NCBI GenBank assembly: GCA_001655205.1
Contig: LPNZ01009306.1
Span: forward strand, 11,902 to 75,901
Length of the DNA stretch: 64,000 bases
Reading direction: 5' to 3'
From: Lenisia limosa
Lineage: Eukaryota > Protista > Breviatea
Each line of letters starts with the position of its first letter. Within the stretch, counting starts at the first letter, position 1. Shown here one piece after another: positions 19,063 to 23,760 of the stretch. A model generated the notes under the pieces. That model did no database searches and was not told the DNA's origin. It saw only the letters and a list, made by a program, of their open reading frames with translations. The position numbers and the translations under genes were made by a program.

Positions 19063-22000
19063 ATGAAGTTTGAAGGGACGCTTGCGGCGTATTCGTCTCC
19101 AGAATGGCGTTCAGAGTACATTAATTATCCAAAACTGAACCAGCTCACCAAGGTTGCCCCCCCCCCCNNNNNNNNNNNNNNNNNNNNNNNNNNNNNNNNN
19201 NNNNNNNNNNNNNNNNNNTGCTGCTGTGAAGGGAGATGTCTCTTCTTTGTTTTCCGATGGTATGAAGTGAAGTTGTTTACTTATTCTTTAGAATTAAGTC
19301 CACTGCTCCAAGGCTCTCCCCTTCAACAGGTTTGTTGCTACCCAGAAAAAACAGATAGAAAAGATAAAAAGGGTTTATTTGATTACTATTTATGTATTCG
19401 AAATTCACCCTCTCCAGATTTACGATGTGTCTGAAGAGTTTCGAGTGAGCTGTGAGTCTGAGCTTTTCAAGGTTGACTCCTTTTTCCATTTCAAAAGTAG
19501 GCCTTTAAGGCATTCATCATTCATTATTATGTACTTCTCTCGCGTCGATTATGACTGCTTTGTTTGTAACCATTCAAGTTACAAACTTCCTCAAACGGCA
19601 GGAAGTCCTCTTCCACCAACTGGAGAGACTGCAGCAAAAAGAGGAGTGAGAATTGGATCGCTGGCATAACCCCTTCAGAGCAGCGGAATTGAACGCTTGG
19701 GAATTCAACAAGAAATGGAGGAAGTTACGAAAGGCTTTTATTGAACAATACCGAGGAATGGATTTGCTGATGAATTTTGCTACTATGAACCGTGGGTTTC
19801 TTACATCTTGTTTAACAGATTAACTTTATTCAGAATTAGGTTTTGTCAAAATGGTCAAAAAATACTCCAAATTTCTTTCCCATGCACCAGTGGTGTACCC
19901 TGAAATTGCAGAAAACCGTGTACCATCCCTTAATATCACATGCGAACCCGCAGTATGCTTATATTGTAATTCACCCACCCATCTTTGTTATGGTTCGACA
20001 AATAGACAAGACAACGTGACCAATCATCTACATTTGCATGTGCACCTAACCCCCCCCCTCCGCAGCAGCTCTCACTTCCGAAGGACCGTGACCCTTGGGT
20101 GGAGGCGTTTAGTGACCTTCTCAGAGCCTCGCACGTCTTTTCAACTTACAGTCTTGAGGAAGCTCTCTCAGGAGCAGAAGTGGGTGCCATGATCCGACAA
20201 TTTATTATTACATACGAACCATGGGTAAAAATGTTGTATGTAAAGGATCAGATGAATTTTTCGCTAAACATAGGATATTATATAAAGTTGTAATTATTTG
20301 GACGCGTTACCAAATAGGACGTTATCAATGGCTACTTTGGTGTTGATGAGAAGTTTCGAACGCACCAGCGCAACAGCAAATTCATCCCCCAAAACTCGAC
20401 ACTATTCGGCAGTAAGGGCACCGTGCTGCTGACATTGTAGTTATCTGGGTGTTGCTGGTCCTTTCTCTGTTCTTCCTCGTCTTCAACGATTGGTCTCACC
20501 AGGAATTCCAAGAGAATATGGTAGCCGAGGGTATTGTTTTTAAGATAATTGTGATCATCCAAGCAATGCTATAACCAAGTAGCGATACCATGAGGCCGTC
20601 TATAGGTCATTCCGACCGCTCTTCCTTGGACAGACAATGTTCTTACTTTACGCCCTCAATGTAAGACCCAATATCCAGTGTTCATATTACGTTTCAGGGC
20701 CTGATTTGGACCTCAAAAAAAGTCAACTTTGTATTTATCTTCCAAGTGAGTATATTTACCCTCAGTCAATGGTAACCACCGCAGTTCAACCCTAGAGACT
20801 ACCTTACTCCATACCACATTCTTGAACTTGGCTGTGCAATGATTTCTTTGACTCTTGCCACAATCTATCTTTATCAAAGTGTTATTATTGGACGGATAAA
20901 TCCTCGTGAGTTACCCGAATAACGTAACATTGTAGCTTTTGGTTTCGAACCAACCACATACCCTCTACTTCTCATTGCTCTTCATTTTATTCTTCTTATT
21001 TTGCCACTCCCAATCCTCCACCACCGCTCCCGCCTTTGGATTATCAAAATTATCACACGGATTGCAATGGCTCCTTTCAGACGGGTGCGTTTCCAGGTTT
21101 GCCGACTTCGGAGCCCTTTTGTTATCTCACACCTTAGGACTTTTGGGTAGCTGATCTCCTCACGTCCTTAACCCAAGCATTTGTTGACATGTTTTTCATG
21201 ACCTGTTTTGCTACCAGTGGACTCTACGCTTCAAATAAGGAGGAATTCCGTAAGCTGTGTGATTCTCTATCACGCCTCCAGCCCAACACAGTGTCTGCAG
21301 CACAAGCCCGAGTAGTTGGCCCTTAGTCCTTATCGGCGGTATGCGTTGCCTTTTTCTTGAGAAATTATGTTGCTGGTGATATCTCTCAAAATAAAGAGTT
21401 ACCTTTTCTTCTTCCACGTGTCACATGATAGCTCTTCCCTACATCTGGCGATTCCTCCAATGTCTCAGAAGATATCACGATTCTAAAAAGGTCTGCATTA
21501 TCGTTGCCAATTACTGTATAGGCCTTCCCCCACCTTGTGAATGCGCTGAAATACTCTTCTGGAATTCTTGCTGCCATTTGCACTGCCGGTACGTTGCTGG
21601 AACCCTGGCCACTTTTATTTCGTCCAATGACTGTTGTAGCCTACGCAGCCAACGCAACTCCGGATGGCGATTGGTGGGGGGGGGGGTGCTCCTCCAAGAG
21701 AAGTTGGTTGCAGCAACTGACAATGTCGTAGGGATCGATACCGAGTTGCTTTCCTGCTGTCCAGTATTGTCAAAAGCGCTTTCGTCTACTCCTGGGATAT
21801 CTACATGGATTGGGGTCTTTTCTCAAGGTCAGGCCTTTGTTTATTGACAGACACAGACGACCCAGCCAGTCGCAGTTCGTGTTCTCCGCAAAGTCCATTT
21901 ACGTCATCGCATGTTTCACGTTGGCTTCGTCCCTTTTACTTCTTCCAAATGACCATTTAGGAACTTGTTCCTGCGACTGACCTGGCTTGTTGGTATGGCA

Positions 22001-23760
22001 GTGGAGTTGAGTAACATTCTCCTTCGTCAACACCTTATAACAGTGGTGTCTGTATTGGAGATACTGAGACGCACTCAATGGTCCATTTATCGGTTTGCTG
22101 TTTTTCAGAATTATAAAGACATTGCGTTGCCTTAATTGTCTAGGCTTGAAAATGAACACACGAACAACGTTGGAAGCTTCCGTGCAGTCAACCTTGTCCC
22201 CCTTCCCTTCAGTCTCACGACCTGGGCCAAAGACTCTTCAGCCAGCGTGGGTCTTTTGTGCTTTTTCTTTATGCTTGATGGCTCCAGTCCAATACAATGG
22301 ACAATAGATTGTTTTTAATTAATACTCGCATTCTTTATTTCAAAGAGTAAGTGTCACCCCTCAGGTGTGCCAGAAGTGCCCAACCGTGTTTACCCTTTTT
22401 CGCCGCCGTCACCACTGCCGCCGCTGCGGAAAAATTTTCTGCATCAAGTTGGCTCTGATGTTAAGATACCACCCCTTGTCAGTAGTACATAACCCCCCCA
22501 GATGCGCGAGTAAGAAAACCACTGTTTCTGAAGTTGGAGGGAGGAGTCATGCTGGAGGGGAGGAGTCATGCTGGAGGGAGGAGTCATGCTGGAGGGAGGA
22601 GTCATGCTGGAGGGNNNNNNNNNNNNNNNNNNNNNNNNNNNNNNNNNNNNNNNNNNNNNNNNNNNNNNNNNNNNNNNNNNNNNNNNNNNNNNNNNNNNNN
22701 NNNNNNNNNNNNNNNNNNNNNNNNNNNNNNNNNNNNNNNNNNNNNNNNNNNNNNNNNNNGAGTCATGTAATGTGAGATGAACAAATGCCAACATTCTGTT
22801 GAAGAAATACATTTGACCCTTTCAGCTTGGGGGAGACGCAGTGCGGGTGTGTGATGCCTGTTTCGATATTGAAGAGTCGAGGCCTTCACGCCCACTTGCT
22901 CCTTGCCATCGAATGCTGCATAAAAGCCAGACCCCGTATGGCATGTTGACATATGTGGCCCTTTCCGACCCCTTCATCCGCACTCCCAATGATGACGGTT
23001 ATCTTCCCGAATCCATGATGCAGGAAACTGACTACTCTGACGCCTACCCCGCCTCGCCTTACTCCTTCCATGTAAGCTTTTGTCAGGCGCATTATTGTGG
23101 TTTGAATTTGACTTTTAGGGTTCCCCGGACTACACATACCAAACCGCCACCCCAAGCGCCTCGGTGAATTACTCCGAAGTTTGTGGGAATATTCAGTCGA
23201 CGAAGTCTGGTGACGCCGTTCTGCTTCTGAGCAAAGCCTCTGTTACTCCCTCCTCCAGCAGGCTCTGGGAATTTTTTTTTACCCTTCCTCAGAAATCTGA
23301 GCCGTCGATACACGGCTCAGACGTTCAAACCCCCGTCATCGTGCTTCCTCTCGACACTGCCTCGTCACACTCCGACATGGCGCCACGCAGTCCTTTGCGC
23401 CAATGCAGCCCAGACCGACCCCACATCACAACATCCGTAACCTCCAATGATGGTGAGTGGGGGGGATGGGGGTCTCGCAGAACATAGTTCACATAATATA
23501 AAAAAACATAATATGATATGATGTACTGACAATTTCAATTTGGTTTACATTTCATATTTCTACCTATTACCATCATATTCCATGTTGCAGAAAACCGACT
23601 TGGCGTTCTAGGAAGCTTGCCAAAGTCACATTCTATCGACGATTTATACTGCACCAGCCCCATGTCCATTCGTGATGGTCGCGGAGGTAAGCCCTACTAT
23701 CAATTGATCTGTTCAGGCGAGACAACAATCACTCTTGCTGATTCCGATCAAGATGAATAA
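19063..23760 (+). CDS. XPR1: SPX-EXS phosphate exporter (XPR1/SYG1/PHO1 family) with a C-terminal FYVE finger and Ser/Pro-rich tail
   Basis: SPX: [137 protein letters not shown]...RVCDAC. Confidence 0.88.
22536..22767 (+). repeat. 18-bp G-rich minisatellite (GGAGGGAGGAGTCATGCT)n in an intron, spanning an N gap
   Basis: At least 4 tandem units before the gap and a partial unit after it; starts 3 nt after the donor GT at 22533. Confidence 0.9.

Follow-up and report, generated by a model that had tools for sequence, protein, structure and literature searches.

A single expressed gene of Lenisia limosa joins an XPR1-like SPX-EXS protein to a FYVE finger

Introduction

In human XPR1 (SLC53A1) both termini are cytosolic (PMC11696373), and the pore is blocked at its cytosolic mouth by a loop around Phe623, which corresponds to Phe767 of PHO1;H1 (PMC13521290, PMC11933459). 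Mutating the plug (E622A/F623A) raises XPR1 efflux, and the helix behind it (residues 631–655) is predicted to interact with KIDINS220, an interaction proposed to aid plug release (PMC11933459). XPR1, PHO1, fly PXo and yeast SYG1 reside largely on internal membranes, and the loading of vesicles with inorganic phosphate (Pi) has been proposed as the ancestral role of the family (PMC13521290). Here we describe a relative of these proteins encoded at 19063–23760 on the plus strand of a 64,000-nucleotide (nt) stretch of DNA from the protist Lenisia limosa (contig LPNZ01009306.1; hereafter the window), in which the SPX and EXS domains are followed, within one 915-residue protein, by a zinc finger of the FYVE type.

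The Lenisia protein shares with XPR1, PHO1, PHO1;H1 and SYG1 the same SPX domain, a colinear EXS domain, the Pi-site residues, the tryptophan gate, the plug phenylalanine with its pocket, and the PLPF end. Whereas XPR1, PHO1 and SYG1 stop there or end in a short flexible tail, the Lenisia protein continues into the FYVE domain and a further ~185 residues. Drosophila PXo (PXo bodies) and yeast SYG1 (vacuole) are likewise SPX-EXS proteins connected with organelle-based Pi storage (PMC13521290), and their targeting proceeds without a built-in lipid finger. The canonical PI3P-binding FYVE domains of EEA1, Hrs/Vps27, endofin and WDFY3, for their part, occur in soluble proteins recruited from the cytosol, whereas the finger described here lies ~25 residues from a membrane helix.

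Results

One gene encodes the SPX, EXS and FYVE domains

The gene model comprises 30 exons that together give 2748 nt (915 codons) with no frame break. It was built from joints observed in RNA contigs, and GT-AG borders plus frame were used for the remaining introns. Along the plus strand the domains follow one another in the order SPX, EXS, FYVE. Pfam SPX (PF03105) matched two stop-free pieces (19063–19167 and 19650–19820; E 6.9e-5 and 2e-4; profile positions 1–27 and 287–314), each under the whole-protein cut-off since these are single exons. Five pieces matched Pfam EXS (PF03124) (20923–21147, 21138–21323, 21395–21844, 21721–21957 and 21953–22132), colinear over profile positions 75–324 with E of about 1e-5 to 1e-8 and each above the 25-bit cut-off. 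Pfam FYVE (PF01363) matched the stop-free stretch 22365–22613 (E 3.9e-11; 43.3 bits against a cut-off of 27.8). Chance origin of these matches is not an issue.

The end of EXS and the WxxD motif that opens FYVE both fall within a single uninterrupted exon. Exon 23 (22144–22246; RNA piece 22143–22246) is stop-free and runs from LENEH through the plug segment GSFRAV and VPLPF to WAKDSSAS, with the FYVE tryptophan encoded by TGG at 22223–22225. Its first 23 residues align to positions 756–778 of the 784 residues of PHO1;H1 and to human XPR1 612–629. In the model the plug phenylalanine is residue 654 and the FYVE tryptophan residue 669, which places the start of FYVE 15 residues past the plug phenylalanine. 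Between the last helix and the finger there are ~25 residues, plug included, and the C-terminal tail of ~185 residues behind the finger contains no recognisable domain. The first-pass annotation of this DNA had described the last EXS exon as open and as already containing the WxxD tryptophan, and all of its coordinates hold.

Transcript evidence was drawn from a public 2016 study with a DNA run (0.99 of sampled words) and a poly-A 'metatranscriptomic' RNA run (0.24), contigs of which were placed on 18900–23900. One poly-A RNA contig of 1322 nt, with zero differing letters, extends from exon 17 (21432) to 23790, 30 nt beyond the stop codon, and removes thirteen introns. Its joints are 21488>21520, 21587>21639, 21672>21731, 21919>21961, 22091>22143, 22246>22365, 22447>22502, 22532>22826, 23071>23119, 23178>23293 and 23451>23590, and two further introns of 29 and 30 nt are removed as well. 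The end of EXS, the whole of FYVE, the tail and the stop codon therefore lie on one assembled message. Loose ends tie this contig to another over exons 14–16, and exons 1–8 are covered by other RNA contigs; no contig from the poly-A run of this one study fell on 20236–20903.

Intron 23 (22247–22364; 118 nt, GT..AG), at the EXS/FYVE junction, had been predicted to join the two domains in frame, and the RNA contig is spliced exactly there (22246>22365). The TAA that retention of this intron would bring in (22316–22318) does exist, and the assembled contig splices past it. The earlier proposal of one gene and one transcript for all three domains is likewise borne out, since both domain borders fall in exon 23 and are connected by a spliced RNA contig. 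The product of this one expressed gene is a SPX-EXS-FYVE protein of 915 residues.

Assembly gaps lie outside the domain junction

A DNA contig of 4081 nt is colinear with 18900–22564 and covers exon 23. The assembly has two runs of N within the gene. The first (19168–19218) covers the last part of the ~49-nt intron 1 together with 17 nt at the start of exon 2; RNA joins 19152 to 19219 with 17 letters in between, in frame, and the frame continues from exon 1. The second (22615–22759) lies inside intron 25 (22533–22825), and RNA skips 22533–22825 cleanly. We considered whether the N runs break the gene, and this is ruled out: one lies in an intron and the other is bridged in frame by RNA. In intron 25 an 18-nt unit (TGGAGGGAGGAGTCATGC) is also repeated at least 4.4 times at 22535–22614, running into the gap; the array is collapsed in a DNA contig of the same study (22562>22760). 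A nine-C run within 19153–19167 borders the first N run, and other homopolymers occur in introns (for example a G run at 21676–21687). The assembly gaps seem to be located at homopolymers and repeats.

The channel part resembles human XPR1 helix by helix

For residue-level comparison, single exons were aligned gap-free to numbered human XPR1 chains; several of the alignments are individually weak (E 0.02–1.5 for queries of 20–43 residues), and together they are colinear. Exons 1, 6, 12, 14, 15, 17, 18, 20, 22 and 23 each give a significant match to natural SPX-EXS proteins when compared singly. The Pi-recognising and gate residues considered here are those reported for human XPR1 (PMC11696373), of which Q452 falls outside the aligned stretches.

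Exon 1 (19063–19152; codons 1–30; RNA donor 19152) encodes the SPX N-terminus, covers Pfam SPX positions 1–27, and aligns without gaps to XPR1 1–26, with Y22 kept. Exon 6 (19679–19791) encodes an SPX helix with the basic stripe KKWRKLRK, covers Pfam SPX positions 287–314, and matches 86 natural SPX-EXS proteins at E<=1e-3. Exon 14 (20936–21096; RNA piece 20975–21094) belongs to EXS (Pfam EXS positions 75–124, E 9.6e-9). Exon 15 (21138–21249), also matched by Pfam EXS, supplies the pore helix with DFWVAD and aligns to XPR1 393–418, with D398 kept. Exon 17 (21432–21490), defined by RNA joints, corresponds to XPR1 455–472; R459, R465 and R466 are kept and R472 is replaced by K. Exon 18 (AFPHLVNALKYS; 21522–21588; RNA joints) follows on with XPR1 473–487, keeping K482 and Y483, and the RNA-supported exon 20 (WDIYMDWGL; 21732–21827) with XPR1 515–537, keeping D529 and D533.

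The last two pore helices are encoded by exon 22 (LRLTW ... LEILRRTQW; 21961–22092), which is covered by RNA, by Pfam EXS positions 281–324 and by the XPR1 chain alignment; the equivalents of R570, W573, E600, R603, R604 and W607 are all kept. In the XPR1 612–629 stretch of exon 23 the plug residue F623 is kept. As for the pocket that receives the plug, R466 and the F394 equivalent are kept, and an F391 equivalent can be read at the end of exon 14. SPX-EXS exporters have ten membrane helices, and ten hydrophobic stretches were counted by eye in exons 10–22. As judged from aligned residues, most of the phosphate-site residues, the tryptophan gate and the plug phenylalanine are retained, and the predicted channel matches that of XPR1 helix by helix. 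The nearest natural sequences (among them an XPR1-like fragment, fungal SYG1 and animal-type XPR1 from metatranscriptomes) are only 43–52% identical in the conserved exons, so the protein is not close to any sampled lineage.

The FYVE finger is intact and spliced from four exons

The finger is split over four exons. WAKD is encoded by exon 23; exon 24 (22365–22447; the part with the Pfam FYVE match) contributes the core, with a CxxC pair, the hydrophobic turret FTLF, the RRHHCR region and the first Cys of the third pair; exon 25 (22502–22532; RNA joints 22447>22502 and 22532>22826) continues the domain; and exon 26 (22826–23071; coincident exactly with an RNA piece) ends it with RVCDAC and begins the tail. 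Read through, the finger consists of WAKD, nine residues to the first Cys, CxxC, FTLF, RRHHCR, CxxC and RVCDAC. EEA1 likewise has nine residues from the tryptophan to the first Cys. All three FYVE signatures (WxxD, R(R/K)HHCR and RVC) and 8 of 8 Zn-binding Cys are present. The first-pass annotation had reported the eight Cys, R(R/K)HHCR and RVC, and we find them across exons 24–26.

Exon 24 aligns without gaps to the FYVE domains of endofin, Lst2, WDFY3, EEA1, Hrs, RUFY1 and Vps27, and the finger has the same signatures, eight Cys and core spacing as EEA1, Hrs/Vps27, endofin and WDFY3. The third and fourth Cys pairs are 15 residues apart, which is within the usual range, so no part of the FYVE domain was lost in the gap of intron 25.

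Intron 24 (22448–22501) is 54 nt long, stop-free and in frame, and is spliced in the RNA contig. Its retention would add 18 residues within the third zinc pair, probably wrecking the finger.

The combination is rare among sampled EXS genes

The SPX sensor is known alone and with several effectors (SPX-MFS, SPX-RING, PHO81, VTC and SPX-SLC13), and none of these is known to have FYVE; to our knowledge, no known SPX architecture carries this finger. The searched literature yielded no paper joining SPX, EXS and FYVE. The terms XPR1 and FYVE, and 'SPX domain' and FYVE, co-occur only in papers that, judged by their titles and abstracts, concern unrelated topics. A 2026 review of the PHO1 family names SPX-EXS, ERD1, SPX, SPX-MFS, SPX-RING and PHO81 types, none with FYVE (PMC13521290).

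An exhaustive search of representative proteins with exon 14 (53 aa) as query gave four matches. Two of these (P0003 and P0004) are a 177-aa XPR1-like fragment (51% identical) and a truncated fungal SYG1. We rejected the other two, P0001 and P0002, as relatives; they consist of tandem EXS copies (seven stretches in 415 aa and two in 160 aa) and are most likely assembly or gene-call artefacts. The Lenisia limosa protein itself and close orthologues were absent from this search. Among 120 homologues listed for fungal SYG1, which are fungal wherever the organism is named and so say little about protists, PF01363 occurred in 0, and all had SPX and EXS only. A word search with exon 26 gave no candidates.

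In metagenome contigs of the Joint Genome Institute (JGI), a DNA pattern of EXS motifs with HHCR 39–49 residues past ENEH gave 0 matches; such a pattern would miss intron-rich genes and other linker lengths. The EXS-only control pattern found at least 116 loci there, and among the 116 listed neither R[RK]HHC[RK] nor HHCRxCG occurred within 3 kb downstream. Some of these metagenome loci (L012, L013, L024 and similar) end in ...HIPLHFETP... and have a hydrophobic stretch ~30 residues later. Genes of this type, in a presumed protist group, may encode an extra membrane helix after the EXS end.

Of the 30 atlas clusters nearest natural XPR1, 27 have SPX and EXS, and FYVE is in none of the family sets reported for the 30; atlas look-alikes of the finger are FYVE-only clusters. 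The earlier suggestion that the combination is undescribed is thus supported by the searched literature, the 2026 review, the sampled homologues, the metagenome EXS genes and the atlas clusters. SPX-EXS-FYVE is undescribed in the literature we searched and rare among the sampled EXS genes, where the samples lean towards fungi and animals, the queries were parts and not the fused protein, and a database may already have catalogued it.

Discussion

Since the XPR1 termini are cytosolic, the Lenisia finger should lie on the cytosolic face, beside the mouth of the pore, which is the side required for binding phosphatidylinositol 3-phosphate (PI3P). With FYVE directly behind the plug, a lipid finger would occupy the post-plug control position that is the predicted docking spot for KIDINS220 in human XPR1. 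In the human complex a regulatory element acts on the segment behind the plug (Glu622/Phe623), and FYVE lies at the corresponding place in Lenisia; the human element is a separate scaffold protein that binds a helix, whereas the Lenisia one would be a covalently attached, predicted lipid-binding finger. A KIDINS220-type helix was not recognised in the Lenisia protein.

We lean towards reading the protein as an inositol phosphate (InsP)-controlled Pi channel that is confined to, and possibly gated by, PI3P-bearing membranes. Binding of inositol pyrophosphate (PP-InsP) to SPX, at high cytosolic Pi, would release the plug, as in XPR1 and PHO1;H1. The FYVE domain would read PI3P in cis, in the channel's own membrane, and this reading would hold the channel in membrane domains with PI3P, link the position of the plug to the docking of lipid, or both. 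The channel would thereby be kept, or be active only, in endosomal, phagosomal or vacuolar membranes bearing PI3P (or both), and cytosolic Pi would enter the organelle lumen and not leave the cell. A channel that reads PI3P in cis is consistent with XPR1, PHO1, PXo and SYG1 residing on internal membranes, and with vesicle loading as the proposed ancestral role. The first-pass annotation had suggested an endosome- or vacuole-anchored efflux system that reads both InsP and PI3P. Lipid fingers, however, do not recruit integral membrane proteins from solution, and the predicted anatomy would be better served by plug control or a lipid check in cis than by anchoring.

By analogy with the plug release proposed for KIDINS220 in human XPR1, FYVE might even act as a second key, with PI3P docking pulling or freeing the plug and opening requiring PP-InsP and PI3P together; we regard this stronger version as tentative and rather unlikely. 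If it were true, the protein would be the first lipid-identity-gated SPX-EXS member, and it would offer natural evidence for Pi loading of endosome-like vesicles as an old role in single-celled eukaryotes.

Several points weigh against a PI3P-confined channel as we have drawn it. The SPX phosphate-binding K26 of XPR1 is N in the Lenisia protein, with a K at position 24, and the correspondence between the K-x-x-R-K-x-x-K stripe of exon 6 and the lysine cluster of helix 4 is a purely visual one; a phmmer search of solved structures with this exon returned no SPX alignment. Within the pore N401 and S404 are both T, and the plug residue E622 is S. Helix 1, as read from the predicted exons 9–10, shows no evident GxxxG dimer motif, and no RNA contig supports exons 9–13 or two of the joints. 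The RNA evidence consists of contigs and not raw reads, from which isoform ratios are not readable, and a FYVE-less form that retains intron 23 may coexist with the spliced one. Lone FYVE domains in other proteins bind PI3P weakly.

A fusion that is real but whose finger has no lipid role, being instead a protein-binding or tolerated appendage on an ordinary SPX-EXS exporter, would be compatible with the common shuffling of FYVE domains in protists, and the samples searched yielded no relative that shares the fusion, hence conservation is not demonstrable. We nevertheless consider it unlikely: the three PI3P signatures and the eight Cys are intact, the core is gapless to proven PI3P binders, and an expressed message puts the finger together from four exons. 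The finger could alternatively work in trans, as a contact-site tether in which the channel resides in the plasma membrane, endoplasmic reticulum (ER) or Golgi and FYVE reaches over to PI3P of an adjacent endosome. Trans-acting PI3P fingers are known from integral membrane proteins, among them ER-anchored protrudin (FYVE) and Mdm1/SNX13-type proteins (PX), and the Lenisia protein has ~185 residues of tail beyond its finger. With only ~25 residues from the last helix to the finger, a segment that includes the pore-folding plug, its reach would be short, and the channel's own membrane would be the first that the hydrophobic turret encounters, which makes a tether quite improbable.

The whole arrangement would be illusory if the assembly or the RNA contig had merged two genes, or if messages ended at the retained-intron TAA and FYVE were made separately. 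The N runs in the assembly, the use of contigs rather than raw reads, and the origin of RNA and DNA runs in one study leave room for this, yet the end of EXS and WxxD share a gap-free exon that is covered in the DNA by the contig of 4081 nt and in the RNA by the spliced contig, and both N runs are intronic or bridged in frame by RNA. Neither a start codon nor a promoter-like break lies between the domains, and a separate FYVE product would lose its first motif. Merged genes or two products are, in our judgement, highly improbable.

The PI3P-confined channel bears on two questions left open in PMC13521290, one of them being why the PHO1/XPR1 'exporters' sit mostly on internal vesicles. The Lenisia limosa channel is a natural construct for testing location, the needs of opening, and whether a co-activator protein can be substituted by a lipid. 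Should the fusion turn out to be common or already catalogued, it would still be a clean, RNA-backed case of domain accretion on a conserved channel.

Exon structure and neighbouring features

All 29 introns are GT-AG and measure 29–293 nt; 8 of the 29 are only 29–33 nt, and several of these tiny introns are cleanly spliced out in the RNA contig. The reading frame opens with the ATG at 19063, four codons after an in-frame stop, and closes with the TAA at 23758–23760. In the SPX part, the visible portion of exon 2 (19219–19259) lies between RNA joints 19152>19219 and 19259>19292, and exon 3 (19292–19329) has RNA joints on both sides. Exon 4 (19418–19496), with the SPX helix ELFKVDSFF, has an RNA acceptor at 19418 and a donor placed by GT and frame. 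Exon 5 (19579–19645) was likewise placed by GT-AG and frame, with RNA depth in its bin, as was exon 8 (20066–20224), the linker. Exon 7 (19834–19952), the end of SPX, coincides exactly with an RNA contig piece.

The next five exons were placed by inference, in the region 20236–20903 where RNA contigs were missing: exon 9 (20318–20411), exon 10 (20441–20520) with the first hydrophobic helix, exon 11 (20583–20660), exon 12 (20698–20745) with a KKVNFVFIFQ motif and a colinear blastp match to natural SPX-EXS proteins (E 5e-4), and exon 13 (20785–20905) with a weak colinear match to a natural XPR1-like open reading frame (E 0.024). The 5' joint of exon 16 (21282–21338) was picked among frame-keeping GT-AG pairs, where 21250–21281 combines the strongest donor (GTAAGC) with the customary very small size (32 nt); its 3' end comes from the RNA loose ends. 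Exon 19 (21640–21673) has RNA joints, and exon 21 (21857–21919) is preceded by a 29-nt intron spliced in RNA and followed by the joint 21919>21961. Within the tail, exon 27 (23119–23178) is bounded by RNA joints, exons 28 (23293–23452) and 29 (23591–23686) each match an RNA piece, a 30-nt intron is removed downstream of exon 29, and exon 30 with the stop (23717–23760) follows from the RNA contig and a frame check. The 3' untranslated end is covered by the RNA contig at 23761–23790, where the contig ends.

Upstream on the plus strand (~15800–17700), pieces resemble the RNA-recognition motifs of a PTB/hnRNP-L-type protein (e.g. FSPFGAINRIVIF), and a gene of this kind is probably the upstream neighbour. 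Downstream on the minus strand (~24000–27000), stop-free pieces contain repeated Cys-rich modules (C-x2-C ... G-x2-C-G-x-C), which suggests a gene for a large cysteine-repeat surface or secreted protein, convergent on the 3' end of the fusion gene. RNA depth increases at 23743–23900.

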